Both the position numbers and the translations under genes were made by a program. Of a stretch of DNA of 64,000 nucleotides, positions 11,411-42,489 are shown piece by piece (position 1 is the stretch's first letter; each line of letters opens with the position of its first letter). This DNA comes from Takakia lepidozioides (lineage: Eukaryota > Plantae > Bryophyta). The notes beneath the pieces are model-generated. The model worked only from the letters and a program-made list of their open reading frames with translations, made no database searches and was not told where the DNA came from. Location: assembly GCA_030704615.1 (NCBI GenBank), contig CM060731.1, forward strand, positions 11,966,001 to 12,030,000, read 5' to 3'.

Positions 11411-11497
11411 CTGGCTAGCCACATTTTGGCGAACCTGTTGTCTTGGGTAAGCTTCACGGCACTGTCCTGGGGGGGGGAGAGGGGAGAGGTGTGGCAA
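11411..11497 (+). mobile_element. Possible truncated TRIM-like LTR junction (LTR end, PBS, PPT, LTR start)
   Basis: ...GCCACA (ends 11423), ttt, TGGCGAACC, ~33 nt, purine tract 11469-11489, then TGTGGC, the inverted match to GCCACA. Confidence 0.4.
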
Positions 11498-12191
11498 GTT
11501 CTGTACATCATCATTCGCAATTCGTGAGTTTGAAGCCTGTTGGAAGATTCCAAGTATCCTTCAAATCAGCAGCCTATTTCTGAAAGATATTCGGTTCTGG
11601 ATATTGGGCAGAATGACATCTCAGGCAGGACCAGGTTTGGTCGCTTACTAAGTACTGCTCGGTACAATCGCTGGCGACTGAACAGACTGCCCCAGCATGA
11701 TCTTCAACATCATGGATTTTTGTATAGAAAATCTATGAACTGAACATGCGCCTGCTGCCGCTTGGCGCTATATTGTGTAGTAAGTTTGATCGATGCACAT
11801 GTTCTTCCTCCAAAACTGACTCTTGCTTTACATGACCTTGAAGGACTGGAAAGTGACAAAGGCTTTTACCATCGTGCCTTGAAATTTTGGAATTCACTTA
11901 ACATGCGAGTCATCAAAATTTCACACAGTTCATGGATTCTCAGGACGTAAAGGAAGAGAAGGCTCAAAAATCTCAGGTGTCTCACCGTACTGGTTGAAGT
12001 CGAGATGCTCAAAGATGGTAGTGATCTTGGAGCCAAGGTGATGGAGAACACCAAGACAGTCGCTCTTCCCCCATGTGGAAATCCTAGAAACCGGGCGCAG
12101 AGACCGTGAATGCTCAGCGCACTGACCGGCAATGGTGTAGCTCATGCTCACTCTAGCACTATATTATCCTCACATGTGAATGTCTAGAGCT

Positions 12192-13595
12192 TCACTGGCT
12201 ATCCAGCAATGAGTTTGCGGACCAGGGTTTCATGGAGGAGCATTCCAGATTGGACCCAGGGCTCGCACCGAGCATCGTGCAAAATTGTTTGAAGTACGTG
12301 ATGCGGGCTGCTGCCAGATCAGTGTTCTTGCCGCACTCGATGCCACCATTGATAATATTGATGGTAACCCCGAAACCGGGCAACCTACCAGCTGCACTGT
12401 CCGCACTGGACGGTTGCCAGTTTCCAACCATCACATCATGTATGGAGGGAATGACGCTGTTCCCACTGTTCCAGAACCAGAGGCTGGCCTTGAAGGATGT
12501 CACAGCATTTGTTGCCACCAAGTCTGGGGTGTTAAGAATACCCAGCTGCAAGGCGGCGTCGCAGACACCGTAATTGTAATTCCTGTTGACAAGAACCTTC
12601 GCCCCGTTCAGATCGCATTGCAAGTGTTCGCACCGTGACACATTAATCAGCTGTGATACACACCTCGCAGTACTAGTTTGAACAATTGATAGAATCTACA
12701 GCTCTTCTTAGCACTTTTAAAGGTCTTATATAAGGTTACCAGGAGAGTTGTAGAGGACCTCGCCCGTAGAACTTGTTCCCATTACAGGGATACTGTGTGT
12801 AGCTTGTGTCACAGTAATCATAACTTTGATCAATTTCTCTGATATATTGTAACCCTGCAAGCGTTAAGGAAAAACCCTCCCCAAGATGCACACGCGTTGT
12901 CAGAATGGATGCAACGAGCAATTTATCTTAACCTAGGGACAGGTCCAGAAGGCTCCATGATATGATCTCGACTGTCTATGAAACTGATTTAGTAGCAAAT
13001 GTCGTTTAGAAAACAATTGCTAAATAAGGGGAAGTGCTCTTACTTACGCTAGCTTCGTCGGAGTCTCTCTGCTAAACGTCAGGCCCATCTAGAGTGTTTA
13101 GAGGTCTACATTTTTAGTATCAGCAGCTACTCGAGCTCAGGAATTCCTTGGCAACAGGCATAAAAGTTTGGATTCAAAACGCGCAGGCTTACCAGCAGTT
13201 TCTTGCTGGACATGTGCAGCATATGCAGCAATCTCCCTCAATTGCACTGCAGAACTGCCAGTAGTTCCGAATTTTGGGAAGCTTTCTGCGGCTGTAATGA
13301 AAGCACTGTATGTGTAGAATTGGTTTCTATTGGGCCACAGTTTTGCAAACATATCGCTTGTAACAACACTTCCCAAACCACCACCGCCGCCGCCCCCCTG
13401 CCCCTCACAGGGACCATTTTGGCAGCCATCACCGCAGTACGCATTGGTTGTCCCACAGTAACCAAACTGGCTGCAGCAGTCGTTGGAATCGGGACAAGGT
13501 GAGCTTCCACTGCACTCACCCTGTGCTATCACATAGTTCACTAGGCTCAGCAATGCCAGCAACCCAAGGACGAACCAACGCACAGGCACTCCCAT
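12192..13595 (-). CDS. Secreted GH19 chitinase with N-terminal hevein (CBM18) domain, 3 exons (13193-13595, 12740-12854, 12192-12582), ~302 aa
   Basis: Signal peptide [24 protein letters not shown]; hevein [24 protein letters not shown]; Gly-rich linker; QET and IREI catalytic Glu positions; [15 protein letters not shown]; [15 protein letters not shown]. The short loops resemble class IV enzymes. Confidence 0.95.
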
Positions 13596-14291
13596 TGTCG
13601 TCCCTACACTCTTCCAGCTTCTTGGGCTTGCCCGGCATACACAATCCAACCTTGTCAGTAACGTAAGAGAGGCTATGGATGCCGTGAAATCTGATTGTAT
13701 ATATGTATATATATGGCCCGGAAACCCCACATCCGCTGGATGTTCAGTCTGGCAAAGAGTAGTGCCTGCGTTACTCAAACTAGAACACTAGGTGTGGGAC
13801 CAGCAGCAGCTTGGTGGCTAAGACTGGTACTTGACGACGACACTCTGCCCCAAGTGAAAGTCGCACTGGCCGCCACTCACGTCTTTCAAGAGATTTTGAT
13901 TCCCGCTGGTAATTGGGAGCAGTGACCTCATGGAGAATATTCGTAGGTATCGAAATTTCTAACTCGTAGTAAATGAGCGCGGCACGTTCGTGACGATGTG
14001 GACCTTTTCTTCTTTTTTTCGTTTTTCGGAAAAGGAGCCCCACAGCGGCCTTTTTACCTTTAACTTCCTACAAGGTGAATTTTTCCACTGGCAAAAACTA
14101 CCCTAGGTGGTTATTTTTTCCACCTGTTGTGTCACTTTTTATTTTAATTTGATTAAAAAGGCCCCTGTTCCCCTTTCTCTTTAAAAAAAAAAAAAAAAAA
14201 AGTACTATGGAAGTAAGGGGAGGCTACCCACCTACCAGCATTCATCCACAAAAATTCATGGTACACATACATACCTACCTAGCCTCTAATT

Positions 14292-16959: not shown

Positions 16960-19900
16960 CCACTCTTGATTGATGCGCCCATAGGGGAGAGATGAGGGTG
17001 AAACGGCTGTTGTCTTCACCACGCTGCTTGGCCCGGCGTTTGGCTATGGCCATTTTTTGATTATGCTTGCACACGGCTGTAGCCCACCCACAGAATGGGG
17101 GGACCCAAGCACCTGGTGGAGATGGAATGTTGTTTTTATGGCTGCATGTAGTTTATCCCCTGCCTCTGCACAGGCCTTCGCTGACCAGCGCATGCCGAAG
17201 GCTTTCTTGGCCTGACGTTCCTCAGCGCAGGCCCGCTTAGCCTCGGCTTGAGTGTTTTTTTTTGCTGCACGTTTGGTTTTGGCTCCAAGGGTGTCCTCTT
17301 TCTTCCGCTCACGAGCTTTAATGGCCTCCTCTTTTAGTCTAGCTTTTTGTTCCAAAGATGCTAAGTATACATCTAATGTCATGATTATTCACTTGCTATA
17401 GTCTATGATGGGATCGTTGGCATTCAATCTTACCCTCATGTTTGTATGTGCAGGTGCCTCTGGTAGCGTAAGGAAGCGCGAGATTGAGCTTGGCCTTGGC
17501 AGGGATGGCTGACCCACCACCAGCGAGGAGTCATCGTCGACCTCCATGGGCTCATGACTCGTCCCCACTGCCTCCTCTTCATCGTCATCGACGTCATTGG
17601 GCTGAACTTGGTCGTCCCCATCGTCAACCCACAAAAAGTAGTGGTGCTGGTCTTCGGTTGTATCCGACACACAAGTGCCCAATATCTCTTCCACGTGAAG
17701 CTTTGAAACCAGGCCTTCTTCCTCTAGTTCTGGAGTGGTAGAATGCATGGGGTCTGTGCAGGTCTGCTCTTCTATTTGGTTTGAGAAACACTCAGATGGG
17801 CCCATCTTTCCCACCATAGCTTCAGAATTGAGTGGCCAAATGTCTGTAGTCTTGAACCCCTTTGCAATGTGGTGGGGGGTTAGCCCCTTCTTCAAGGCAA
17901 AGTGAGACCCATTGGGCCAGATCTTCCTTGAGAGCTCCTCTCCTTTGTGAGCCATGGTCTATACATCTTTGTACTTCCGGAAAGCTGTCTTGAATGGCTT
18001 GAACACAGCCACATCAAGAGGCTAGAGTGCATGGGAAGTGTGGGAAGGAAGTGTAATCACGTCCAGTCCTACTGATCTAGCTTGTTTGACAACATCTATA
18101 GTGACATGCGAGTTATGACCATCCAAGATCAGCAAATGCCTATTTGTGACCGAGATCTCGTTGCCCATTGCCTTTGCTGACTCCAAGAAATGTGAGATCC
18201 ATTTGTGAAATAATATTGATGTCATCCATGCCTTCTTTTGCATTGCCATTGTAGCACTAGATTCTTACGACGAAATCTTTTACCTTTGAAAATGTAGAAG
18301 TTCGGAATATGACTTCTTGCAGCGTTCATGCAGGTGAGAACACTCAACCATTCGTGTTGATCTGGCGTTATCGAATGGACAGCTCTTGAACCAACCTTGG
18401 CAATTGAAGGAGAGATAAGCAGTTACCCACCACATTTTTATGAAGAAAGAGAAGGAGAAATGGAAATCCTAGATGAACCAGCCACTGTGAGTTTACAGGA
18501 TGAAGTGGTGACTGGTTGGACAATCACAGCTGATGAGCAGGTGAGAGAAGTGAATGTGGGAACTGAAGAGGAACCGAGGATGGTGAAGGTAGGAGCTGAT
18601 TTGGAGCCAGAATTCTTTGAGGAAGCTAAGAGTTTGTTCATCAAATACAGAGATGTATTTGCTTGGAGCTACGAGGATCTAAAAGGGATACCACCTGAGA
18701 TCTGTCAGCATAAGTTTGAATTGGAACCAGGGTCAGTACCAATCAAACAGGCAAGGTACACAATGAATCCCAACTATGCACAGAAGGTTGGAAAAGAGAT
18801 CAAGAAGTTGGCTGAGGCTAAGTTTATATACCCAATAGAGTATACAACTTGGTTGTCACCATTGTGATAGTTCCCAAGAAGAATGGTAAACTGAGAGTTT
18901 GTGTGAACTATAAGAAGTTGAATGCTTGCACGAAGAAAGATCCATTTCCCTTGCCATTCACAAAACCAGTATTTGACACTGTGGCAGGCCATGAGATGTA
19001 CTCATTCATGGATGGCTTCAATGGTTATAATCAAGTGCAAGTGGCAGAAGAAGACCAGGGAAAGACAGCTTTCATCACAGACTGGGGTGCTTATGCATAC
19101 AAAGTCATGCCTTTTGGACTTTGTAATGCACCAGCAACCTTTCAGAGAGTGATAAGTGAATCTTTTCATGAGTATCTAGATGATTTCATGCAGGTGTTCT
19201 TGGATGATTTCAGTGTGTACAGCTCTAAGAATGAGCACTTGCATAAATTGGAGTTATGTCTGGCCAGATGCAGAATGAGAGGTCTGGGCCTGAATCCAGA
19301 GAAGTGTACTTTCTATGTGAACTATGGGGCTGACAAGATCTGGAATTGCGACGAGTCAGGGCCCAAGCTTGGCAAAATGGAGGTACTGTGGTGGACATGA
19401 CAGTACTCTAAGAATCTCCCACCCATTGACGTGTTCATCTCTACACTAGTCTCTGTTTGTTGTACTTTTCTGTCAAATTAGCATAGAATGACATTTGAAC
19501 ATTTTCAGGACATAGTCCCTTGGCCCTTCCACTCTCAAGTCCTTGAGCTACTCTGAGACTTAGGTATGGATGTCTAGATCTGAACCATCTCACCCACCCC
19601 CAGCCAGGGATCCTTTGTGTGAAAGGTGTGAGCCGTTCTTGAGTAAGTTCTGCTACCTTGAGACGGAGTTGGGTCAGTGTCAATGGGTGACCAATATCTT
19701 GCATTTTTTCAATGTACTTCACTAGTTCATCCTCCTCCTTGGCATCTAGCGTTCCCTTGCTACCTCTCTTCCTTGTTATAATTCCATACCAATGGTTTCG
19801 TAGACTAGTTGCAGGTACCCCAAACATCCGTGCCGCAGATCTGATGTCGTCCCCACGATCAATAACTGCCATGGCTCCTTGGAGCTGCACATCAGTCCAG

Positions 19901-20290
19901 TTCCCGTTTTTATGTGGACGTGGTCCTCTTCTTGGTCGCCATCCCGTCCTAGCAGGAATGTCTTCATTACTCTCCACATTGAAATTAGCTAGATCTGATG
20001 GTCTTTTTGTTGCATGTGTAGTTATATCGATCATCACTTCAGGTGGAAACTCTTCTGTAGATCCATGACCAACTTGAAATTCAACATTGGAATCCTGCCC
20101 TTGGCCCCATTGATAATATTGATCACTCTCGTCTTCACTTTGACTGCCCTCATTTGCTGCATGTTCACAACGCTCATTGTATGCACGATCAGAGTCATTA
20201 GTCTGGCTGTCAATCTCTACTGTGTTGTCACCCTCATCAACTACCTCAGAGTTTGGCAGCAATCGGAAAGCTTGGCTTGGTCCATGGCTA
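16960..20290 (-). mobile_element. Degenerate pogo-family (Fot1/Tigger-like, DD35D) transposase, rearranged
   Basis: HTH_psq-like (WTDVQLQGAM..IRSAARMFGVPATSLR) and CENP-B HTH (EEDELVKY..WVRWFRSRHP) in 19441-20262. IWNCDESG is inverted at 19320-19393. Also EWLSVLTCMNA, AWMTS..F..W, and LLILDGHNSH...HAL*PLD with a Q>stop change. Element ends not located. Confidence 0.85.
18405..19319 (+). mobile_element. Ty3/gypsy (non-chromoviral, Athila/Tat-like) RT fragment embedded in the pogo transposase
   Basis: VFAWSYEDLKGI, W.SP.VIVPKKNGKLRVCV.YKKLN, MDGFNGYNQ, MPFGLCNAPATFQR, VFLDDFSV, LNPEKC. One frameshift near 18860; no LTRs. Confidence 0.9.
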
Positions 20291-23854: not shown

Positions 23855-24158
23855 TAATTTTAGTGTATAGAGCAAGAATAAGTGTCATAATATCATCAGC
23901 CACCTCATCGTCATCATTTTTTGGATCTCCCCGGACCTTGAACATGATGAAGTATCTTGCTCCCCCCACACTAGTCTGTCTCATCAGTCCACATAAGTCA
24001 GTGTGCACGAAGTCTCCTGGTAGTACCGCTCTCTTTTGTGGGTCACTCCAAGGAAATGGGCTTCTGTGAATCTTACAATATGCACATCCCACACAACAAT
24101 CGTTATCCTTCTCTTCTAGGAGTCCGTGAACCATGCCAGTTGTCTCTTGAGCTCCTAT

Positions 24159-24921
24159 TGTCGCGGCCCTTTGCCTTGAGGGCAGGGGGGGTCGGGACAC
24201 AAAAAGGACTGCCCCTGTGGTTGGGGCAATGGCAACAATAGGTACGGGGGTTGAAGCACCCTTGAGTGCCCAAGGCACTCAAGGAGGCGGAGGCGCTCAC
24301 TAGGTGGAGCCCCACACACTGGGTTGTGGTGGGGGTGGTTCCACGAGGGGTGGGGGTAGTTTAGTGGGACTTAGTGGGGGTGGCATAGGACTCACCTTGG
24401 GGCGGAGACCTTGTGGTAGGAGTCGTGGGGAGTCTTGGGACTCATCACGGTCCAATGGGGCCATGGTGGGTGGGCCAAGACTCACCGCGACTCATCACCG
24501 GGAATCGAGGGTCTTCATGGTGGTTTGCCATAAAATGACTGGGTTGTTTGTGAAACCCCAGTGGACAGTCACAGAAGTATATATAGGGAGTAGTAACCCT
24601 GAGAACGGTGCAAGCCCGTTGGTGACCGAAAGCTAGTGAGTGAGCGTGCGAGCCGGAAAGCGACCAAGGTGTGGGGAGCTATTCCGGACTGCCATCTACC
24701 AAAGGGAATTTCCACTAGGCCCAAAGTGGTGGAGGGTCTTTTGGAGGAGCAAGCTGCGTCTTACATCAGCGAAGCGGCAGACTAGAATATGCATTAGCTT
24801 CCTTATTGGTGAGCAGCCGAAGCTCCAAGTTGGCCCGGCGGCCAGTTTGGGAGTTAGGCGCGCGCATCAAAGCGAGTAACTATGACTTGAAGGGGAGCTT
24901 ACCGAAGTGAGGTGCGCGACA
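24159..24921 (+). repeat. 5' LTR (763 bp)
   Basis: Colinear with 30778-31058 plus 33031-33476; TG..CA ends. Confidence 0.95.
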
Positions 24922-27090
24922 CTTGGTATTAGAGCCTAGAGTTCAGTACGCGATCGTCCTTGAGATCGGCCTCATCATGGGGTGGGGCAAGACAAAGCGA
25001 AAGCGGAACGGCCCAAAAGATGATGATCCTGGTGAGCCCGGTAGGGGCGACGTGTCACTGAAGCGGCAATTGGAAGAGGCGATTCTGAAAGCGAGGCCGC
25101 TAAAGAACGGGAGGTATTTTGGGAGTCGGAGCCCGAGGACTTCCCAGAGGCTCCGCCAGACCCACAGATGTCTCTCATGCCAGCAGCCTTTTGGGAAGGG
25201 TTGTTGGCGCAGTTTGGCAGGACATTGAAAGACGTGTTGAGGGTGGCTAATGCCACTTCCATTAAGGCTAAGTTTAAGCTGAAGCCTAAGAAACCCGACA
25301 CCTTCAAGGGCGTCCGAAAACGGAAGGCACTCAACACCTGGCTTTTAGAGCTAGAGCAGTACTTCTGGGCTAGGCAACTCCTCTTGTGAGTTGTATCAGG
25401 AGACTCGCGCCTTGCGTAAAGGAAGTCAATTAATGTTCGTGAGTGGGATAATTTCCGGAACTAACGTATCGTTGTTGGTGGACACATAAGCGTCGCACTC
25501 TTTCATGACACCGGCAACGGCACGGAAGCTGGGGCTCCCGACAAGTGATGTGCCTCTATTGAGGTACGTTCTGCCAAAGAAAAACCACAATTTGCGACGA
25601 GGTTGGCGTTCGATGTTCCTCTTCAACTCGGGGGTTGGGAGGGACGTGAGAACTTCACCATTTGGGAGATCGATGGAGTGGATCTCATTTTGGGGATGAC
25701 ATTTTTGAGCAAATCCGGAGCGGTCATAGATGGCCGCAAGAGAATAGTCACGCTACCGTGTGGGAATGCTGGCGAAGTTTTTTGGGTATTGGAAACGCCC
25801 AACCGAGAGGGATGGCGAATAAAACTGCTGTCAGCAAAGGAGTGGCTGTGGGAGGCCACACGAGTCCCAGTTTTTGCTTTACGTTAGACAAGTGGAAAGA
25901 GAAGTCGATAGGAAGCTGAGCCCAGATTGGATCAAGGGGATCTTGGAGAGATACCAGGATGTGATGCCAGAGGATTTACCAAGCGGCTTGCCACGAAAGA
26001 GTTGACCACAAGATAGAGGTAATACCGGGATCTGAGCCGCCTGCCAAGGCGCCCTACCGGTTGAGCCACAGAGAGTTGGTCGAGCTGAAGTAAATCCGGC
26101 CGAGTAAATCACCCTACGGAGCCCCGGTGCTATTCGCAGCCAAGAAGGATGGGACGTTGCGGATGAATGTCGATTACAGGGCTCTGAATAAGTTGACTAT
26201 AAAAAACCGGTACCCTTTGCCAAGGATCGACGACCTCTTCAATCGGTTGGCAGGAGCAAAGTATTTTAGCCGGATCGATTTGCGCTCGGGTTACCATCAA
26301 ATTCGAGTGGCGGAAGGAGATGAGGAGGAGACCGCGTGCAGGACAAGATATGGTTCATATGTGATCTTGGTGATGCCTTTTGGGCTCACCAACGCACCCG
26401 CGACTATTAGCACGCTAATAAATAGCCTTTTCCAGGAGTGGTTGGATGACTTTGTGATCGTATACATCGACGACATCTTGGTGTACTCAAAAACAAAGGA
26501 AGAGCACCTGGAGCACCTCAAAAAGGTGTTCCAGAAATTGCGGGAAGAGAAGCTGTATGCCAAAGCTTCAAAGTGCAAATTTGGGGTCACGAAAGTGGAG
26601 TTCCTAGGGCATGTGATTACATAGGATGTGATCAAAATGGATGACAGAAAGGTGAGGGCGATCTTGGACTGGGAGCCTCCGACTTCGGTCCCGGGAGTGC
26701 GATCCTTCCTAGAACTCGTCTCCTATTACCGAAAGTATGTGAGAAATTTTGCCAATATCGCGGAGCCGCTGTCAGACCTTATGTGTAAGTCCAAGGTATG
26801 GGTATGGAACACCTTTTGTGGTCAAGCTTTTGCCGAATTGAAGCAGCAGATGGCGGAAGCTCCAGTCCTGAAAATTCCGGAGTTCGACCGTCCATTTGAG
26901 ATTCATACAGATGCGTCGGACTTCGCAATTGGGGGTGTGCTCATGCAGGATGGACGTCCAGTGGCTTACGAAAATAAGAAACTAAATGAAGTGGAGCAAC
27001 GGTGGCCTACACACGAGAAAAAAATGAACGCGGTGGTGCATTGCCTTGAGCTTTGGCGCCACTATGTTGGTTCCAACCCGGTGAAGGTGC

Positions 27091-28235
27091 AATTCATTTC
27101 AGATTTATCCCTTCAGTTCTATTATACTCCTTTGTCACACTTGGCACCCTGTTCTAGGCTTCTATGATTCTTAACAGGTCTGTCACTTTTTCTCTGAGTC
27201 GGGCTCCCTCCCTACTCGGGTGATTACCTGCCTTCGTGTTTAGTCCAGAGTCCATTGTCTCATGTTTACTGATCGTCTGGTATCTCCTACACAGTCCCGT
27301 GTGTTAAGGCCTCATGGCAGCCTTCGGGCTTGTAAGAGTTTAATTTTTTCCCTTCAATAACTCTTAATAAAATTCTCAGGGCAGGGAGGTGTATTGAATG
27401 CAGGTTTTATCTGGGGAAATTATAACATGAACTTACATCTTATTGACAGTGTTGCATGTTTTGAGGAGCCATTAAAAAAACTCATAAATTTTGCTCACTA
27501 TCTTATATTGTTTCAAAAGAGAACTGGAACCATGGCACTGGCCTCACTTCTGCCTTCATGGCTTTCCATGAGGTTATTTTTTCCTATATAGGGCCCACCC
27601 CCGAGAGGGGGCAGTAGCCGTGAGAGTGGCTGGCTCTAGTTACGCCGGCTTTGGCCGGAGTTTTCTTTTTTTCTTTTTTTCTTTTTTTAATTTTACTTCA
27701 AAGGGAAGGAAGCCCTGTAATTCATATGTAAGGAGATGTCCTGGAAAAAATAACCGGGACAGAAGGCCATAAGGCTTACATCTTAGAAGATTGGGTGCAA
27801 CCCAGAACCTCCTACAAGGCGAACATAGAGCTTGAAGCTATTCTAAATATCTCTAAATGAGCAAGAAAGCCATTGCTATGAGGGAATGACTTGCCAAAAA
27901 CTAAGAGCTCAAATATCCTAATTAGAGAAGCCATTGGTGCAGCATATCAGAATACCGACCAGAGCCTAATTCAAGCAGAAAACATGCTAATGGCATCGCC
28001 ATGCAACCTTGAGAAGCAACTTGAAAGCAGAAGAACTTACCAGCGGCAGGCCCAAGCCAGAGTCTAACTAGAGCCGAATTACTAGAGCCGAACTAATCAT
28101 TCAAGATTGCTGAATATATCAGTCGAAGATCAACCCACGAGCAAAATAGAACAAACAAGCTGAATACCCCAGTTGCTGCCATGAACTGCACATGCAGAGA
28201 GCAAGGCACACGAGAAAGGCTTCATAACAAAAAAG
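27091..28235. mobile_element. ~1.15-kb composite insertion interrupting the chromovirus RNase H
   Basis: RHYVGSNPVKV at 27060-27090 resumes as TDNVTVKYLATQPKL at ~28238. The insert contains structured motif copy B and an inverted poly(A)-tailed repeat. Confidence 0.85.
27589..27660 (+). repeat. Structured ~75-nt dispersed motif, copy B
   Basis: tagggcc-ca-ccccc GAGA ggggg-cagt-agccg tgagag tggct-ggctcta-gttacg-ccggc TTTG gccgg. Confidence 0.7.
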
Positions 28236-31058
28236 ACACGGACAATGTCACGGTGAAGTATTTAGCCACGCAGCCTAAGTTGTCCCCAAAACAACTTAGG
28301 TGGCAAGACACTTTGGCAGTGTTCGACGTGGATATCCAGTACAAACCGGGACGGGACAATGTGGTGGCCGATGCTTTAAGTAGAAAGCAGCAGCTCATGT
28401 TGGTGTACAGGGGCCAGACGGCGCTCCAAAGGAAGATCCGGAAGGCTTACTGAAATGATGAAATGACGAAGTCCGTGATGCAGGACTTGAGGTTGGGGGT
28501 TAAATCGCAGTTTCACTTGCACAATGGACTGCTCCGGTACAAGCAAAAGCGTCTCTACGTACCGAAGGGAGGGATCAGAGATAGTCTCTTGAGAGAATGT
28601 CACAATGGCCCACTTACGGGCCACGGTGGAGCCAAGCGCACCGCGACACTCTTGAAGAAAGAGTATTTCTGACCCAAACTGAGGGAGGAGGCCGAGGAGT
28701 ATGTCAAGACATACACAACATGCCAACAAAACCGGAGTGAGTACAAAAAGCGGGGCTGTTACAACCCTTGCCGATTCCAGAGGGGTCTTTGGAAAGTGTC
28801 TCAATGGATTTCATGACTGCTATGCCGATGTCAAAAAGATTCGATGCAATCATGGTGGTGGTGGATAGGTTTAATAAAATGGGCCATTTTATTCCCACCA
28901 AGGAGACGACAACGGCGCAGGAGACGGGGTGACTTTACTTCACCCACGTCTTCAAGCATCATGGACTTCCGAAGGATATTGTCTCGGACTGCGATCCAAA
29001 GTTTACAAATAAATTTTGGAGGGCACTTTGGAAGAAAATGGGGACGGAGCTCAAGTTGAGCACCGCCTTCCGACCTGCGACGGACAGCCAAACAGAAAGA
29101 GTGAATTCCGTGGTGAAGCAGACATTGCGAAATTATGTGTCGGCAGACCAATCAGACTGGGTGGAACACTTGGATGCGGCAGAGATCTGTTATAATAACA
29201 CAAAACACTCCGCAACGGGGGTTTCCCTTTTCGTATTGGTCTATGGAAAAACACCTCTGGTGCCGACAAGTTGGGCCGCCTAGGACGTTGAGGAACCGGT
29301 AGCAGCAGTGGTGCTGGAAGAACGCGAGCGTTTGTTGGCGCTCGCAAAGTACAACATTGCCAAAGCTTGGAAACGGTATGAACGGCAGGCGAATCGGAAG
29401 CGGAGGGAAGTTAAGTTTGAGGCAGGCATGGAGGTCTGGTTGAACATCAAGAATTTTCGACTACCTCCGGAAGTGAGTTCGAAGTTCGTACCTCCATATG
29501 CGGGGCCCTTTCGCATCCGGAAGGTTATGAATGAGGATGCGTATGAATTGGAGCTGCCGGCAAACAACAAGGTGCATCCGGTATTCCACGTCTCCCTTTT
29601 GAAGCCTTATTTCAAAGATGAAGCGCGTCCGAATCGGCATCAAATGTTGCGTCCGCCACCTGTGCTGTTGGATCATGAAAATGAACCTGAGTACGAGGTG
29701 GAGGCAGTGCTTAAGTCGAGGAGGTTCAAGAATCGAGAAACGGAGTATCTCGTAAAATGGAAAGGCTATCATCAAGTGGAGGCAACTTGGGGGTGCGTAC
29801 CTCAGAAATGAGAAACGCATCCGAGGCGGTTGCAGCTTTCGAAGGGTGACCTCAAAAGCAGAAGAAGCGTTGATGGGGACATCAACCTTGGATCGTGGGG
29901 GAGGAAATGCATGCTTAGCCCGGCTTAACTAGCTTAGGAATTCGATTGCAAAAACTTGTGTTGTACAGATTTTGTTATAAATGAAATGGTTTCCAAATGT
30001 TGTGCTTCCTATTTTGTTTGGAATGGTGATGCATGGTATGGTTGGCTAGTGTGTAAAATGCATGCTAGCTTACAAAAGTGGGAGAGGTAAATTGGATTAA
30101 TCGTGTGTTTGCGCAGTGCCGGAATCGGCTGACTCCCATCCAAGAGGCAATGAAACTTGCACCTTCTTTGGGAGTTCACGTGCTAGTGCGCACCTGGCGC
30201 GTGCGCGTACTATAATTGCGCTATCGAGGGGGTTGTCTTGTAGTGCGGATTAACGCGGAAGCTACGTGCTTCCGTTCACGTACTATAATCGTGTAACCTC
30301 GGGACGAAGTCGTAGTGCGGCTTCGGCGTGTTCCCGTACCTCAGGCCAGCATTCTAAGGCGGACCCAATTGTAGTGATTGAGGCGCACGGTTGGTTCAAG
30401 GTTATCTTCCTAGTAAAAAAGGGTTCAAGGTGAACCCTTGCTCAAGGTGATGCCAAAAGCAGCATCATGAGCGGTCACAAGCAATGTTGTTGCAGTAAGG
30501 CGATTCGATCCTCGGGGAGGATCGTTCCTTGGCCTTGAAGTGAGCCAAGAAGAGTGCACTGGGAGGAGCTTGAGAGGCTCCACTCTTAGCCGGGACTTGG
30601 AGGAAGTCGCCCGAACTAGGTAGTAGAGAGTTGAGTCAAGTGGGGGTTTGGTTCTTTGCCATAGGACGCCATGGTACGGAAACAAACTCCTTGATGTGGG
30701 ACGCCACAACTTGGATATTAGTTTCCACAAAATGGACAAGTCAATGAGGACATCGACTCCCTGTTGGTAGGGGTGTGTGTCGCGGCCCTTTGCCTTGAGG
30801 GCAGGGGGGGTCGGGACACAAGAGGGGTTGCCCCTATGGTTGGGGCAGTGGCAACAATAGGTAGGGGGGATGAAGCACCCTTGAGTGCCCAAGGCACTCA
30901 AGGAGGCGGAGGCGCTCACTAAGTGGAGCCCCGCACACCGGGTTGCGGTGGGGGTGGTTCCACGAGGGGTGGTGGTAGCTTAATGGGACTTAGTGGGGGT
31001 GGCATAGGACTCACCATGGGGCAGAGACCTTGTGGTGGGAGTCGTGGGGAGTCTTGGG

Positions 31059-33022
31059 CCTGGGGGGTGCACTCCTCATTAAATGTACCAGCCACGTGCG
31101 TGCACAAGAGGGGGTATTTTAAACCCCCCCATGTACAACATTATACATACAGAGGGGGGTCTAAAACACCTTAAATATAATTTTACAGGAGGGGGTTGTT
31201 GTATTTCAAGGGGTAGTGTAGTGGTAAGAAAGACGTTTTGGCCGCGATGCACCGCGGGATCAAATCGCGGGATCATCTCTTTGTTTGTTTTTGTTTTTGT
31301 TTGTTTTTTTCTCTCCGCGATCTTTCTCCCCTTCCCTCCCGCCGCTTTCTCTTTTCCCTCTCCTCCTCTCATCTCCTCTCCACTCCTCTCCCGCGTTCGC
31401 CTTCCCTTCCGCGGGCTTTCTCTTTTCCCTCCTCTCCTCTCCCCTCCTCTCCACAGGGCATGGTATTCTTCCTGATGTTTACAAGGTTTAGGGGAGAGTT
31501 TAGGGAAGCGATCCTTTTGGGTTGATGGGAGGGCAAATCCTCCATGGGTCATGACACAAGGTCAAGGACAATATGGTGAGGGCACCTTCTTCTTCGACCT
31601 ATTTCAGCCTGTCTTGCCCTCTCAACAGAGTCGGCCCTGAATTTGCAGCATTGAGCAGACCTGGCATGAGGGACAACTGCAATTGCAAGGTGTGGCGTTT
31701 TCTTAAGGTACGATGTGAAGATTTTTTTCTGTCTGGAATATTGATGGAGAACCGAATCTTGGTTGTGTAAAACTCATCAGGGTTGCAGCTCATGTGGGAC
31801 GGACACAGAGAGGAAGCCTCTTTCACAAACTCCTGAGAGATGAAGGCTCCAGGTGAAAGCTCTCCCAACAATCGTGCACACTGAGCATTGACAGACTCTT
31901 TGGGCATGCATGCAGGTGCAACCCTGGGCCGATGGGGTAATTGCAGGGCCCAGTTCACAACTGAAAGATTTCGACCTGATGAATGAGGGGCTGGATTTTT
32001 ATCAAAACTGATTGAGCGGTGCATTAAGGGCCAGCCAGGGTGCAAGCATTCCTCTGCGAAGGGGTGAAGCCCGCACTTTGCATTGCATGATGTTGAGGAA
32101 GAGCTTAAAGAATCGTCTCTTTGCCACCACAATGAGAAGTTGGCCATTTTTTTTGGGCTTATCAACACACCCTCTGGGATGTCTTTAGGGATCATCGAGA
32201 ATCTTCGGATGTGTGGTGATTGCCACACAGCCACCAAATTCATCTCAAAGATAGCTAAGCAAGAGATTGTTGTACGGGATGCAAACCGCTTTCACCACTT
32301 CCAAAATGGTGTTTGTTCTTGTGGGGATTATTGGTGAAATGAAATGCTTGTCAACTAATTGAATGTATTGAACTCTGTCAACTGCGAGTCAAGTTGGACT
32401 CCAACAGTGGCAGCAAAGGCGCACGAAATCTCTTTTTGGAGAGGAATTCTCAATAGTAGGTTTTGAACATAATTGGACCTTGCGAAGGTTGAAACTGTAG
32501 AACAAGTTTAGAAACTGTCCTAGTTGATGAACAGAGGTGCAGTGACTAGGTGTCTTCAACAGGGTCACTCTCTGATGAAATACCCAGGATTGCATATCAG
32601 AAAATAGAAACTTTCTTCAGGCCTCTTGCACATAGGGCATTGACAATGTCCCTTTCATCTCGGCATCTGATTATTGTTCAAAGTGAGATTCCACAACAAG
32701 TTTTATCGAGGGCAAACATTTTTTTAATTAATTTATTATATTTTATTATATTTTTAAATGAATAAACTTGATATAATATTAAAACGTACATATACATATT
32801 TGAAGGTATTTTTTAATTATTGAAAAGGGAAATATACATACAAAAGGGTTTTTTTTTAAAAAATTACAAATTTCTATATATTTACAGGAGGGGGTTTTAT
32901 AATCTTCAAAAAGTATGTACAGAGGGGGTATAAATGATCCAAGGACCCGTATACAGGGGGTTTTTTTATTAGGCGGCGAACGCACGTGATACGGACATTT
33001 TATAAAGAGTGCACCCCCCAGG
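31059..33022. mobile_element. Non-autonomous TIR DNA transposon (Pack-type) carrying a captured gene fragment
   Basis: Perfect 16-bp TIR CCTGGGGGGTGCACTC / GAGTGCACCCCCCAGG, imperfect to ~45 bp. 8-bp TSD GTCTTGGG at 31051-31058 and 33023-33030, single-copy in the 5' LTR. ACAG(G)AGGGGG subterminal repeats at both ends. No transposase. Confidence 0.93.
32071..32337 (+). pseudogene. Captured DYW cytidine-deaminase domain fragment (no ATG, PPRs or PG box)
   Basis: [88 protein letters not shown]. HxE and CxxC are intact; in-frame TGA upstream at 32065-32067. Confidence 0.92.
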
Positions 33023-35103
33023 GTCTTGGGACTCATCACGGTCCAATGGGGCCGTGGTGGGTGGGCCAAGACTCACCGCGACTCATCACCGGGAATCGAG
33101 GGTCTTCATGGTGGTTCGCCATAAAATGACTGGGTTATTTGTGAAACCCCCGCAGACAGTCACAGAAGTATATATAGGGAGTAGTACCTCCGAGAACGGT
33201 GCAAGCCCGTTGGTGACCGAAAGCTAGTGAGTGAGCGTGCGAGCCGGAAAGCGACCAAGGTGTGGGGAGCTATTCCAGACTGCCATCTACCAAAAGGAAT
33301 TTCCACTAGGCCCAAAGTGGTGGAGGGTCTTTTGGAGGAGCAAATGGGGACCGTTATGTCCCGGTGAGCAGCCGAAGCTCCGAGTTGGCCCGGCGGCCAG
33401 TTTGGGAGTTAGGCGCGCGCATCAAAGCGAGTAACTATGACTTGAAGGGGAGCTTATCAAAGTGAGGTGCGCGACACCTATGGTTAACATGAGCCAGTCT
33501 TCGGTGCCAAACTGCTAACATCTGGGCACTCTCCTTCTTAGTCTCGACACCGAAAGATCTTGCAATGTTGGCTTGTTCGGGAGGTGGTGGGAGAACTTCA
33601 ATCTCCAACTGATACATCTTGTTCTTCATTAACGTGGCCATTGTGGATTAAGCTGCAACCGTCCTGCAGAGTGTAGATATCATTCTGAGCCGCTCTGTAG
33701 CAAGAAAACAAACTCCGCCCAATATCTACCCCAAACGCCCAAAAAATCAAATCGGTGAAAGCCCAGCGGAGACTTAAGAGGCTGTCCAAAACGATGTGGC
33801 AACCTGCATTCTATACCATGTGGTAAATGGCATGGCCCCCACTTGGGTGCCATGTGCCGTAATATGGGAACATACTTCTGGAATGTTCTAAAGTGCAGAA
33901 TGCTCTAGAGCGGGTTCCTGGAACGTACTTGCCTAGTTACAACTTAGCATTCTAGCACAAGCTACATACGAGGAGGACTGTACCAGAGCATAAGGGAGGC
34001 TATACCAGAGGCAAGGAGTGTACGTGAGGACCCTGTAGGCGAGCATGGAGGCAATGAAAGCAGAAGCAGAACCCTGCAAAAAGAGATGAAGGGGCTGCCC
34101 GAAAAAACTTCCACTGACGGAGAAAAGTCCATCAAAACTTTTTGAGGTCTCCTGTACTATAGGCATCGGAGGATCCGACGTGCAGCTTGACCTCTTATAA
34201 AAGCTTATCTAGGATGGGATCTTTGCCCACCGGCAGGACACATTGTCATGTGCAAAAAACTACGGCAGGTCCGCCTGCAAGTGAGATGGGTTGAAACGTC
34301 TGAAACCACCGTATGTGATCTGTCATGTGTTGGGTGCATCGGCTGTCTGCATATCAACGATCGCTCAAGAGCTGTGATGAGACCTCAAATGCCTTGTAAG
34401 AGCTAGTCTTCTTGCTAGCTGACGCTTCATCCTTCTTCCCAACGTTTTCTTTGCTGGGGTACGGGCATTCTCGCGGCCAAGCCTAGCTTCTTGCTGAAAC
34501 AACCTATGCGTAAGGTTTTCTAAGGTTTTGCATCGGGTGTGCATTCCTAAGCTCACATCACGCTATTATAGCCTGCTAGCAAGTTGCTCATAATCTTGTC
34601 TAATACAGCCTTGGAGGTAAATCTCATATCTCCTCTATTCGCCAACTGGCTTATGGTCATATCGATCTTTCCAAGAAAGGATGCGATACTATCACCCTCT
34701 TGTATTAACGGACACTTAAAGAATTTATGCTGCAAAGCATGGACACTCTCTTCGAGTCCTATTCCTAAATCACTTTGATCTTGTCCCAAATGGCATGAGA
34801 CATCTTGCAAGCAACCAGATAACCTAGATGCATCTTATGTAGGGCTTGACACAAAAGGCTAATGGCCCGACTGTCGCATTTGACCCAAACTATTTGATCA
34901 ACTCCAGCTTCAGCTGGTTTGACTTCGGTTCCATCGGCCACTGTCAAAAGATCCTTCCCCATAAACACTGGACGCATATGGAGTTTCCATAAATGGAAGT
35001 TTCCCCCCATCGAATCGGTCTATATTCCCCAAGTCCATATTCCCGGAGTCCGACATGGCTGACACCAGGCGGACGGAACAGTCCTTTAACAAAGGACGAC
35101 AAA

Positions 35104-36936: not shown

Positions 36937-38181
36937 GTGGCAAGTTCTGTACATCATCATTCATGTGAGTTTGAAGCCTGTTTGAAGATTCCAAGTATCC
37001 ATCAAATCAGCAGCCTATTCCTGTCAGATATTCGGTTCTGGATATTGGGCACAATGACATCTCAGGCAGTACTAGGTTTGGTCGCTTACTAAGTACTGCT
37101 CGGTACAATCGCTGGCGATTCCGAACAGACTGCCCCAGCATGATCTTCAACATCATGGATTTTTGTATAGAAAATCTATGAACTGAACATGCGCCTGCTG
37201 CCGCTTGGCGCTATATTGTGTAGTAAGTTTGATCAATGCACATGTTCTTCCTCCAAAACTGACTCTTGCTTTACATGACCTTGAAGGACTGGAAAGTGAC
37301 AAAGGCTTTTACCATCGTGCCTTGAAATTTTGGAATTCACTTAACATGCGAGTCATCAAAATTTCACACAGTTCAAGGATTCTCAGGACGTAAAGGAAGA
37401 GAAGGCTCAAAAATCTCAGGTGTCTCACCGTACTGGTTGAAGTCGAGATGCTCAAAGATGGTAGTGATCTTGGAGCCAAGGTGATGGGGAACACCAAGAC
37501 AGTCGCTCTTCCCCCGGGTGGAAATCCTAGAAACCGGGCGCAGAGACCGTGAATGCTCAGCGCACTTATCGGCAATTGTGTAGCTCATGCTCACTCTAGC
37601 ACTATATTATCCTCACATGTGAATGTCAAGAGCTTCACTGGCTATCCAGCAATGAGTTTGCGGACCAGGGTTTCATGGAGGAGCATTCCAGATTGGACCC
37701 AGGGCTCACACCGAGCATCATGCAAAATTGTTTGAAGTACGTGATGTGGGCTGCTGCCAGATCAGTGTTCTTGCCGCACTCGATGCCACCGTTGATAATA
37801 TTGATGGTAACCCCGAAACCGGGCAACATACCAGCTGCACTGTCCGCACTGGACGGTTGCCAGTTTCCAACCATCACATCATGTATGGAGGGAATGACGC
37901 TGTTCCCACTGTTCCAGAACCAGAGGCTGGCCTTGAAGGATGTCACAGCATTTGTTGCCACCAAGTCTGGGGTGTTAAGAATACCCAGCTGCAAGGCGGC
38001 GTCGCAGACACCGTAATTGTAATTCCTGTTGACAAGAACCTTCACCCCCTTCAGATCGCATTGCAAGTGTTCGCACCGTGACACATTAATCAGCTGTGAT
38101 ACACACCTCGCAGAACTAGTTTGAACAATTGATAGAATCTACAGCTCGTCTTAGCACTTTTAAAGGTCTATAAGGTTACCA
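36937..38181 (-). pseudogene. Partial duplicate of the chitinase locus (intron 2, exon 3 and 3' flank of 11491-12741)
   Basis: Near-identical to 11491-12741. Exon 3 is open (37635-38025) but has R>M, R>H, T>M and A>V changes. Homology stops 2 nt past the intron-2 donor; exons 1-2 are absent. Confidence 0.92.
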
Positions 38182-39870: not shown

Positions 39871-42489
39871 TCACCAGTAATCCCCACAAGAGCAAACACC
39901 ATCTTGGAAGTGGTGAAAGCGGTTGGCATCCCGCACTACAATTGCTCGCCCAACAATTTTTGAGATGAATTTGGTGGTAGTGTGGCAGTCGCCACACACC
40001 CGAAGGTTCTTAATGACATGGAGAGGCTTTGTAGGTGGGGTGCTGATGAGCCCAAAGGCAATGGCCAACTTCTCACTGTGGTAGCAGAGAGAGGACTCCT
40101 TTTGCTCCTTTTCCACATCATGCAATGCAAAGCGCGTGTCAGGCACATATCCAGCCTCTTTCATCCGCTCGGATAATCTTTCGAGCTCAATATGGATGTC
40201 CTTAATTAGGGGATGGAATTTGTCGTCTACAAAAAATGTTGTGACCTGTTTTTTGACCTCAATGCAGCTGTGGCCTGGCTCCTTTCTGATACCTCTGTCC
40301 TGCATGATTTTTCTCACATTTTGTGTATCTTCCCACCTGCCAGCAGCAGCATAGACGTTTGATAGCAGCACATAAGTTGCAGCATGTTGTGGATCCAACT
40401 TGAGAACGCATTTTGCTGCACGTTCTGCTACCTGAACATTGCCATGAATTCTGCAAGCACCAAGCAAAGCCCTCCACACTGCAACATCCGGTTCGATTGG
40501 CATTTTGGTAATGAAGTCCTCTGCTTCATCCAAATGTCCTGCACGGCCAAGAAGGTCCACCATGCAGCCAAAATGCTCTACTGTTGCAGTGAGGGAATGA
40601 TCTTGACTCATGGAATCAAAGTAGTGACAACCTTCATCCACTAGGCCCACATGGCTACAAGCCGAGAGAACACATATGAAGGTGACACCATTTGGCTTCA
40701 AGCCTTCCTCTTGCAATTGTTCAAATAGGTGCAGGGTCTCCCTTCCACAGCCATGCTGAGCATATCCTGCGATCATTGCATTGCATGAGACTATGTTTCG
40801 TTCCGCCATATCGTTAAACACTTGACGCGCATCCTTCACACTACCACATTTGGCATACATGTCAACAAGGGCAGTTTCCAGAATGATATCCTGTAAAATC
40901 CCAGCTTTGATGATGTCAGCATGGACCTCTTTGCCCTTTTCCAGGGCTACCAGGCTGGCACATGTATTGAGAACACAAATGAATGTGACCTTGTTGGGTG
41001 TGACACCTTCTTGTGTCATTTTCTCATACATCTTGAGAGCCTCTCTACTAAAGCCAAGCTGAGCATGCCCTGCAATCATCGCATTCCATGCCACCACGTC
41101 TCGTTCAGCCATGTTGTCAAAAACTTCACGTGCACCCGTCATGTCCCCACTTTTGACATACATCCCAGCAAGGGCAGTATGTAGAATGACATCAGGTGCA
41201 ATTCCAGCTGTGATAATGTCTTTATGAACCTCTTTGCCCTTTTCCAGGGCTGTCAGGCTGGCACATGCATTGAGAATACAAACAAACGTGACCTTGTTGG
41301 GAGTCACCCCTTCTGACATCATTTTCTCATACACCTCAAAAGCCTCGATACCACACCCAGACTGAGCATATCCTGAGATCATCGCACTCCATGACACCAC
41401 ATCCTGTCGAGCCATATTGTCAAACACTCGACATGCAGCCTTCATGTCCCCACATTTGGCATACATGTCAACAAGGGCAGTCTCCAGAAGAATATGTGAA
41501 GCAAGTCCAGCGCTTATGATGTCAGCATGGACCTCTTGACCTTTCTCCAGGGCTGCGATGCTAGCACATGCCTCGAGGATGCATATGTAGGTGACCTTGT
41601 CAGGTATCATCCCATCTTGTAACATGCTCTCGTACATGTCAAAAGCCTCCTCAGCACACCCATGCTGAGCATATCCAGAGATCATTGCATTCCAAGAGAC
41701 TACATTTCTTTTAGCCATGTTGTCAAACACTTGACGTGCATCCTTCAATCTCCCGCATTTCGCATACATGTTAACGAGGGTATTCTCCAAATTAATGTAT
41801 GGCGTAAGTCCAGCTTTGATGATGTTGGCATGGACCTCTTTGCCCTTCTCAAAGGCTCCTAGGCTGGCACACACATTGAGAACACAAATGAACGTGACAT
41901 TGCTGGGCGTCACCCCTTCCCGTATCATTTGCTCATACATCTCGACAGCCTCCCTTCCACAACTGTGCTCAGAATATCCTGTCATCATTATGGTCCATGT
42001 AAATACATCTCGTTCAGGCATTTTGTCAAATACTAGGCGTGCATCCACCAAGCTCCCGCACTTGGCATACATGTTAACAAGGGTGTTAAGCAGAAAGATG
42101 CTTGGCTTGAATCCACTTTGCATGATGTGTGCATGCACCTGCTTTCCCATTTCAAGGTCCTCAACTCTGATGCAGTCTCGCAAGAGAGAGACATAGTAAT
42201 TGACGTCGGCTGAAATGCCTTGTCTGTGCAAAGCATTCACTGCTTCTTTCAGAAGTCCAGCCTGACATAGTGTCCTCACAGCCTCACAAGAGCGCAAAGA
42301 GTTATTGTTAACTCCCTCACCAGCTGGTGCTCGACCTTGTACTGTGGCAGCTACTGCTACTTTGACCCAAGGAAGGTCAGACCAACCCTTAATCCAAAGG
42401 GTCTCATTTGTCTGCTTATGCCTGAAGTCGGGTGATCTTGGACTTTTCTGAGAAAACCACCAGTGGGTACTGCACAGCTGAGCAGCCAT
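39871..42489 (-). CDS. Intronless PLS-class PPR-E1-E2-DYW organellar C-to-U RNA editing factor, 872 aa
   Basis: N-terminal targeting-like region, 17 PPRs (L-S-(P-L-S)x4-P2-L2-S2), E1/E2, PG box PGHSCIEV, HSEKLA, CGDC and terminal DYW. Confidence 0.97.
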   Translation of the reverse strand: MAAQLCSTHWWFSQKSPRSPDFRHKQTNETLWIKGWSDLPWVKVAVAATVQGRAPAGEGVNNNSLRSCEAVRTLCQAGLLKEAVNALHRQGISADVNYYVSLLRDCIRVEDLEMGKQVHAHIMQSGFKPSIFLLNTLVNMYAKCGSLVDARLVFDKMPERDVFTWTIMMTGYSEHSCGREAVEMYEQMIREGVTPSNVTFICVLNVCASLGAFEKGKEVHANIIKAGLTPYINLENTLVNMYAKCGRLKDARQVFDNMAKRNVVSWNAMISGYAQHGCAEEAFDMYESMLQDGMIPDKVTYICILEACASIAALEKGQEVHADIISAGLASHILLETALVDMYAKCGDMKAACRVFDNMARQDVVSWSAMISGYAQSGCGIEAFEVYEKMMSEGVTPNKVTFVCILNACASLTALEKGKEVHKDIITAGIAPDVILHTALAGMYVKSGDMTGAREVFDNMAERDVVAWNAMIAGHAQLGFSREALKMYEKMTQEGVTPNKVTFICVLNTCASLVALEKGKEVHADIIKAGILQDIILETALVDMYAKCGSVKDARQVFNDMAERNIVSCNAMIAGYAQHGCGRETLHLFEQLQEEGLKPNGVTFICVLSACSHVGLVDEGCHYFDSMSQDHSLTATVEHFGCMVDLLGRAGHLDEAEDFITKMPIEPDVAVWRALLGACRIHGNVQVAERAAKCVLKLDPQHAATYVLLSNVYAAAGRWEDTQNVRKIMQDRGIRKEPGHSCIEVKKQVTTFFVDDKFHPLIKDIHIELERLSERMKEAGYVPDTRFALHDVEKEQKESSLCYHSEKLAIAFGLISTPPTKPLHVIKNLRVCGDCHTTTKFISKIVGRAIVVRDANRFHHFQDGVCSCGDYW

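Follow-up and report, generated by a model that had tools for sequence, protein, structure and literature searches.

The interval 31059-33022 is a real insertion of a TIR DNA transposon, with a proven empty site preserved in the same stretch of DNA (64 kb, called here the window). Our best explanation, to which we give a probability of about 80%, is that this 1,964-bp element is a non-autonomous, Pack-like TIR element, most likely of the hAT type, which carries a pseudogene fragment of a PPR-DYW gene and was inserted after the surrounding retroelement had integrated. There is nothing unusual in a transposon that holds a non-functional piece of a host gene, and the insertion probably has no effects beyond those common to transposable element insertions in general.

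A TIR element with a preserved empty site

The 16-bp inverted ends of the element are perfect: the left end reads CCTGGGGGGTGCACTC, and the right end is its exact reverse complement. The left TIR (31059..31101, + strand) comprises the 16 perfect nucleotides at 31059-31074 within 43 nt at 81%, and the right TIR (32980..33022, - strand) comprises those at 33007-33022, with a weaker inverted similarity extending to 43 nt, again at 81%. The element is flanked by two copies of the 8-bp TSD GTCTTGGG, at 31051..31058 on the left and at 33023..33030 on the right. The bases next to these copies differ (A at the left copy, the G of the TIR at the right one), which limits the duplication to exactly 8 bp.

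A single copy of GTCTTGGG, representing the empty target site, is found at 24432..24439 in the uninterrupted 5′ LTR of the retrotransposon that houses the element, where the context ...GGGGAGTCTTGGGACTCATC... contains the 8-mer once. In a repeat search of the window, 24159-24442 matched 30778-31061 and 24432-24731 matched 33023-33322, and, in a three-junction alignment, both junctions of the element with the 3′ LTR aligned to the empty site in the 5′ LTR. This pair of filled and empty sites shows a genuine insertion and leaves no role for chance. The initial annotation had described a 1964-bp element with perfect 16-bp TIRs and an 8-bp TSD, parked in an LTR, with the empty site visible in the 5′ LTR; the repeat and junction comparisons confirm this description throughout and place the element in the 3′ LTR. 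A search of the 64-kb window for the TIR, allowing up to 3 mismatches, gave no matches beyond the element's own two ends, and a metagenome scan with a 20-mer of the element terminus gave 0 matches.

The insertion is younger than its host retrotransposon

The host is a decayed Ty3/chromovirus LTR retrotransposon on the + strand (24159..33476), delimited by its LTRs, TSD, PBS and domains. Its 5′ LTR spans 24159-24921, and its 3′ LTR (30778-33476) is split by the element and measures 727 bp with the insertion removed. The LTRs start with TG and end with CA, a 5-bp TSD (CCTAT) is present at 24154-24158 and 33477-33481, and after the 5′ LTR, at 24924, stands TGGTATTAGAGC, which we take to be the usual tRNA-Met-type primer binding site. 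The interior encodes, in this order, RT, RNase H, the integrase SH3 domain and a chromodomain, in broken frames, which marks the host as a decayed member of the Ty3/chromovirus group; the TG..CA LTRs, the 5-bp TSD and the order RT-RNase H-integrase-chromodomain are all as in Ty3/gypsy chromoviruses.

Between the two LTRs, 45 of 727 aligned sites are different (K2P 0.065). As LTRs are identical at integration and the element is present in the 3′ LTR only, the DNA transposon is younger than the retroelement. The element entered the LTR after its first 281 bp, and about 140 bp downstream of the insertion point, at ~33170, stands a TATATATA string; we read this point as lying within the U3 of the 3′ LTR. 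Under the mechanism that we propose, the element would have landed in the U3 of the 3′ LTR of a chromovirus-type retrotransposon after the latter had integrated. Judging from the TATA string at ~33170, the element would be sense-oriented in this U3, so that the genomic RNA of the host would include it and progeny copies would carry it in both LTRs.

Other repeats and ORFs were seen in the window. Two direct copies of a 1.25-kb sequence, 97% identical and separated by 25.4 kb (11491-12741 and 36937-38181), enclose the chromovirus along with a chitinase-like ORF and further DNA; they may be the LTRs of a large retroelement with nested insertions, or have arisen by segmental duplication. The chitinase-like ORF (213 codons, 13137-13778, - strand), with the Pfam chitin-binding and class I chitinase (GH19) domains, is probably an exon of a chitinase gene. 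An ORF of 273 codons at 19441-20262 (- strand) contains a Tc5-transposase-type HTH DNA-binding domain (pogo/CENP-B-like) and is a further DNA-transposon remnant.

The cargo is a truncated DYW deaminase segment

The captured 3′ end of a PPR-DYW gene is found at 32068..32337 on the + strand, as an open frame of 89 codons (32068-32334) that ends in a TGA stop codon (32335-32337). The DYW homology begins at 32072-32074, and 87 of the 89 codons are homologous. This segment matches the Pfam family PF14432 (DYW_deaminase) with 135.9 bits against a cut-off of 24 (E 4.3e-40), covering profile positions 7-93 of 93, and contains the HxE motif as HNE, the CxDCH motif as CGDCH and the terminal CSCGDYW. It had initially been annotated as an uninterrupted 88-codon DYW segment with HxE, CxxC and DYW intact. 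The frame is indeed open and the motifs are present, but the length has to be corrected to the figures given here, and the invariant S of HSE is replaced by N.

The segment does not amount to a whole domain. A complete DYW fold, counted from the PG box, takes about 136-138 residues, and ~51 N-terminal residues of it are missing here. In the 138-residue DYW domain of OTP86 (7o4e), the match is limited to residues 52-138, so that the first third of the deaminase fold, including the PG box, lies outside the open frame; further matches are to residues 526-612 in a synthetic PPR-DYW protein (9kfx) and to residues 32-117 of the 117 residues of Arabidopsis DYW1 (7w86). Upstream of the fragment there are in-frame stops at 32065-32067 (a TGA, directly adjoining) and at 31984-31986. 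A stand-alone DYW gene would have a complete ORF with a start codon 5′ of the catalytic motifs; here, the first in-frame Met is codon 38, which lies 3′ of HxE, in agreement with the lack of an ATG reported at first.

The conservation of the fragment was examined in an alignment with 115 PPR-DYW C-termini, in which 52 columns are at least 85% conserved. The fragment is off-consensus at 6 of these 52 columns, compared to a mean of 2.0 in the references, a set that was picked by similarity to the neighbouring PPR-DYW gene (see below) and may favour canonical sequences; six or more such deviations were found in just 6 of the 115 references. Two of the changes affect invariant columns (HSE to HNE and KNLR to ENLR) and introduce residues present in 0 of 115 references, while the remaining ones (AIAFGL to AIFFGL, R to G, V to M and R to Q) are absent or nearly absent in the references. 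These substitutions at conserved and invariant positions would fit a relaxed constraint and decay. The points against decay are the 89 open codons, the retention of all zinc and catalytic ligands, and a dN/dS of 0.18-0.24 relative to the neighbour, a value that mostly reflects the shared past of the paralogues as working genes and says little on the period after capture. Together, the open frame, the ligands and the dN/dS suggest that decay since capture has been slight, and it takes the parent gene to separate this decay from the divergence between paralogues.

A degenerate PPR continuation of up to ~150 bp upstream of the fragment is possible but unproven, and would be interrupted by stops either way. 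In tblastn searches with short DYW proteins, gapped alignments reached back to 31888, with the PG box matched by KGQPGC (~32030-32047); in an alternative pairing, LIERCIK corresponds to the helix that precedes GYxPDT. A local DNA alignment of 31963-31996 with codons 770-781 of the neighbour gene had a z of 5.4, which was reached by 1 of 300 shuffles, and the global DNA alignment of the upstream region to the neighbour is roughly collinear. An HMM of the 115 PPR C-termini gave no extension beyond 32074, and a PG-box-to-DYW sub-profile, applied to the read-through sequence (X at stops), performed no better than 5% of shuffles and 9% of unrelated six-frame tiles. The PG box had been reported as lacking, which is approximately right, with the reservation that KGQPGC, in the same frame behind the TGA, is PG-box-like, though statistically not solid; the same holds for the short DNA match to upstream codons of the neighbour.

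We considered whether the fragment could be of biological use, either as a trans-acting DYW module (DYW1/DYW2/MEF8-like) or as a source of small RNAs acting on DYW genes, and find this highly improbable. Short proteins of the DYW1/DYW2/MEF8 type complement DYW-less PPR proteins, and a module of this kind would agree with the 89 open codons, the full set of zinc and catalytic ligands and the terminal DYW. The extent of the fragment also resembles the part of Arabidopsis DYW1 that it matches in 7w86 (residues 32-117/117). However, there is no ATG before HxE, a TGA stands directly upstream, ~51 residues of the N-terminal part of the fold are missing, two invariant positions hold residues never seen in the references, and no transit peptide or upstream coding exon is detectable. 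The missing residues, the upstream stop, the absence of a usable ATG and the replaced invariant positions mean that no editing enzyme is made; hence, the caution of the initial annotation that activity was not implied was justified, as the fragment is no working deaminase gene. As for small RNAs, the fragment is inverted relative to the DYW region of the neighbour gene 7.5 kb away, with 80% identity, and its sense orientation in the U3 of the 3′ LTR, if correctly placed by the TATA string at ~33170, would include it in retroelement transcripts. Against this, a repeat search of the element found no internal inverted duplication able to form a hairpin, and 80% identity is low for an efficient siRNA targeting of the neighbour.

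The fragment was copied from a paralogue of the neighbouring PPR-DYW gene

The window contains, outside the element, an intact intronless gene for an 872-aa PLS-E-DYW protein (39871..42489, - strand), which served as the comparison paralogue. The fragment and the DYW region of this neighbour share 76% of amino acids and 80% of nucleotides over 267 nt, and the DNA homology ends 1 nt past the stop codon. At this level of identity the fragment was copied from a different paralogue, as had been proposed at the outset from the clear difference between the two DYW sequences. Regarding the parent gene expected for a Pack-type element, the window thus offers one paralogue that is 80% identical.

A word-based protein search with the 89-aa DYW piece among proteins of 49-156 aa, in a collection from which the source genome is absent, found no sibling or parent, with a best match of 76%. 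The corresponding search with the C-terminus of the neighbour, in a collection likewise lacking the source genome, gave a best match of 72%, to a synthetic PPR-DYW protein, and the neighbour's own product had no exact-protein match in public assemblies. No convincing TIRs were found around the intact neighbour gene. Within this gene, at 40598-42109, there are five tandem 303-nt units with 64-79% identity, which are P-L-S repeat triplets visible at the DNA level.

According to our best explanation, the interior of the element would be foreign DNA of the Pack or transduplication type, including the last 87 codons and the stop codon of a PPR-DYW editing-factor gene, with a paralogue at another place in the genome as their source. 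Since there is no poly(A) tail, the fragment was probably copied from DNA and not from mRNA.

Subterminal motif arrays and the remaining interior

Motifs of the form ACAG(R)(A)GGGGGT occur 7 times in the element, all within ~140 bp of its ends. The left subterminal array (31106..31197) has 3 copies on the + strand (G runs at 31110, 31154 and 31191) and 1 inverted copy (C run at 31124-31130), and the right array (32884..32965) has 3 copies. In its strict form, the motif is confined to the element ends within the 64-kb window. We propose that the element would be moved in trans by an enzyme that recognises the 16-bp ends together with the seven subterminal ACAG(R)GGGGGT motifs; mobilisation in trans follows from the fact that the element encodes no transposase. 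A Pfam search of all internal frames on both strands found no family except DYW, and so no transposase or transposase remnant, which makes the element non-autonomous.

Inside the left end, a T-rich and then CT-rich low-complexity tract (31280..31455, + strand) contains a 71-bp internal direct repeat. This is the CT-rich tract noticed at first behind the left TIR, now delimited and found to include a duplication; its end (...CCACAG|G) resembles a polypyrimidine tract with a splice acceptor. At 31205-31320, strings similar to box A and box B precede a long T-rich run, an arrangement reminiscent of a Pol III unit. A tRNA identity of 31205-31280 was rejected, as neither ARAGORN, even at 80% thresholds, nor Rfam gave a match.

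The internal DNA between this tract and the DYW piece (31456..32067, ~610 bp) has no Pfam family in any frame, and its last ~150 bp may be the degenerate PPR continuation discussed above, for which the evidence is weak. A 214-codon antisense ORF that starts with ATG (31599-32243) was rejected as a gene, having no Pfam family and a non-protein-like Atlas score; its 214-aa product had no exact-protein match in public assemblies. The DNA 3′ of the DYW stop codon (32338..32883, ~545 bp) is AT-rich from ~32700, with an AATAAA at ~32763 and no poly(A) run, and shows no similarity to the 3′ flank of the neighbour PPR-DYW gene.

This anatomy also bears on the time at which the DYW piece entered the element. 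It could have done so after the element had landed, as filler DNA in double-strand-break repair or by a nested insertion. The single copy in hand does not show that the cargo was present at transposition, and the 611 bp 5′ and 545 bp 3′ of the piece, which match no Pfam family, would be in line with a late entry. On the other hand, there is no second TSD, TIR or poly(A) tail around the DYW piece, and the neighbour gene, the sole donor nearby, has no more than 80% identity to it. We therefore regard a late entry as quite unlikely and retain the capture of the fragment before insertion, as in a Pack-type element.

Assignment to the hAT superfamily is favoured

Elements of the hAT superfamily have short TIRs (about 10-25 bp) with the terminal consensus YARNG, and are mobilised by a transposase with a BED finger, DDE and hATC. 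The element described here has an exact 8-bp TSD, a short TIR (16 nt perfect) and subterminal repeat arrays, all of which are hAT features. Its termini read CCTGG and so depart from the hAT terminal consensus 5′-YARNG, and its TSD agrees with the weak hAT target consensus nTnnnnAn at 1 of 2 positions. On this anatomical basis, we assign the element to the hAT superfamily with some preference, at a lower confidence than that given to the explanation as a whole. As no autonomous partner or sibling was seen, the assignment to a superfamily, and even to a 'family', is made on anatomy alone.

Its TIRs and TSD, together with the absence of a transposase and the host gene fragment inside, give the element the anatomy of the Pack type. 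A Pack-MULE, that is, a non-autonomous element of the Mutator superfamily with a gene fragment, is an unlikely alternative to hAT that deserves some weight, as the CCTGG ends misfit the hAT consensus and G-rich termini are common in MULEs. MULE TSDs, however, are usually 9-11 bp long, and typical MULE TIRs measure at least 100 bp, compared to a TSD of exactly 8 bp and TIRs of 16 nt (perfect) to ~43 nt (imperfect) in the present element. In favour of a Pack-MULE, these elements are the classic carriers of gene fragments in plants; they are also discussed in PMC6839031. GingerRoot elements have a 6-bp TSD, TIRs of 100-150 bp and TA...TA termini (PMC6839031); a GingerRoot identity was excluded, since the TSD, the TIR lengths and the termini do not fit.

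Implications for the spread of PPR-DYW sequences

PPR editing-factor genes number in the thousands in early land plants such as Takakia. A 2026 survey counted 2,016 PPR genes in Takakia lepidozioides and named dispersed duplication, linked to retroposition, as the main source of the PPR expansion in early land plants (PMC13386178). A literature search returned no paper that ties DYW domains to Pack-type DNA transposons in early land plants.

The initial inference of a vehicle for shuffling or amplifying editing domains, or of an siRNA source, gains no support here: no second copy, parent gene or autonomous element was retrieved from the collections searched, which lack the source genome. The element might belong to a family of small hAT-like Pack elements that has been amplified and scatters DYW/PPR modules at the DNA level, perhaps with an LTR relay, an idea that we regard as improbable. 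If it were true, there would be a second route for the spread of PPR-DYW sequences beside the published retroposition (PMC13386178), in a genome with about 2,000 PPR genes. The sense orientation of the element in the U3 of the 3′ LTR would then also allow the DYW piece to be copied into both LTRs of the host's progeny, in a relay from a DNA transposon to a retrotransposon.

A single dead fragment does not change the understanding of editing. As a clean case with a preserved empty site, it indicates that cut-and-paste elements also move DYW sequence, and its value is that of one well-delimited, datable example that could enter a census, across the genome, of the PPR/DYW cargo of TIR elements.

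Comparison with known systems

Stand-alone DYW proteins (Arabidopsis DYW1, 7w86, and the DYW2/MEF8 class) resemble the fragment in having the catalytic DYW region without PPR repeats. They are, however, complete genes that have a start codon and a targeting sequence and include more of the N-terminal domain, whereas the fragment stands behind a stop codon and has invariant residues replaced.

Among transposons, the element is like Pack-MULEs, Pack-CACTA and the gene-fragment-bearing GingerRoot (PMC6839031) in being a TIR element that holds a host gene fragment, and, as in most Pack elements, this fragment is truncated and non-coding. It differs from MULEs and GingerRoot in the lengths of its TSD and TIRs, and in having just one recognisable gene fragment inside. 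Compared to Ds-type non-autonomous hAT elements with captured host sequence, it differs in its termini, which read CCTGG and not YARNG, and in having no known autonomous partner. It shares with them the 8-bp TSD, the short TIRs and the subterminal motif arrays, as well as the absence of a transposase and an interior unrelated to a transposase gene.
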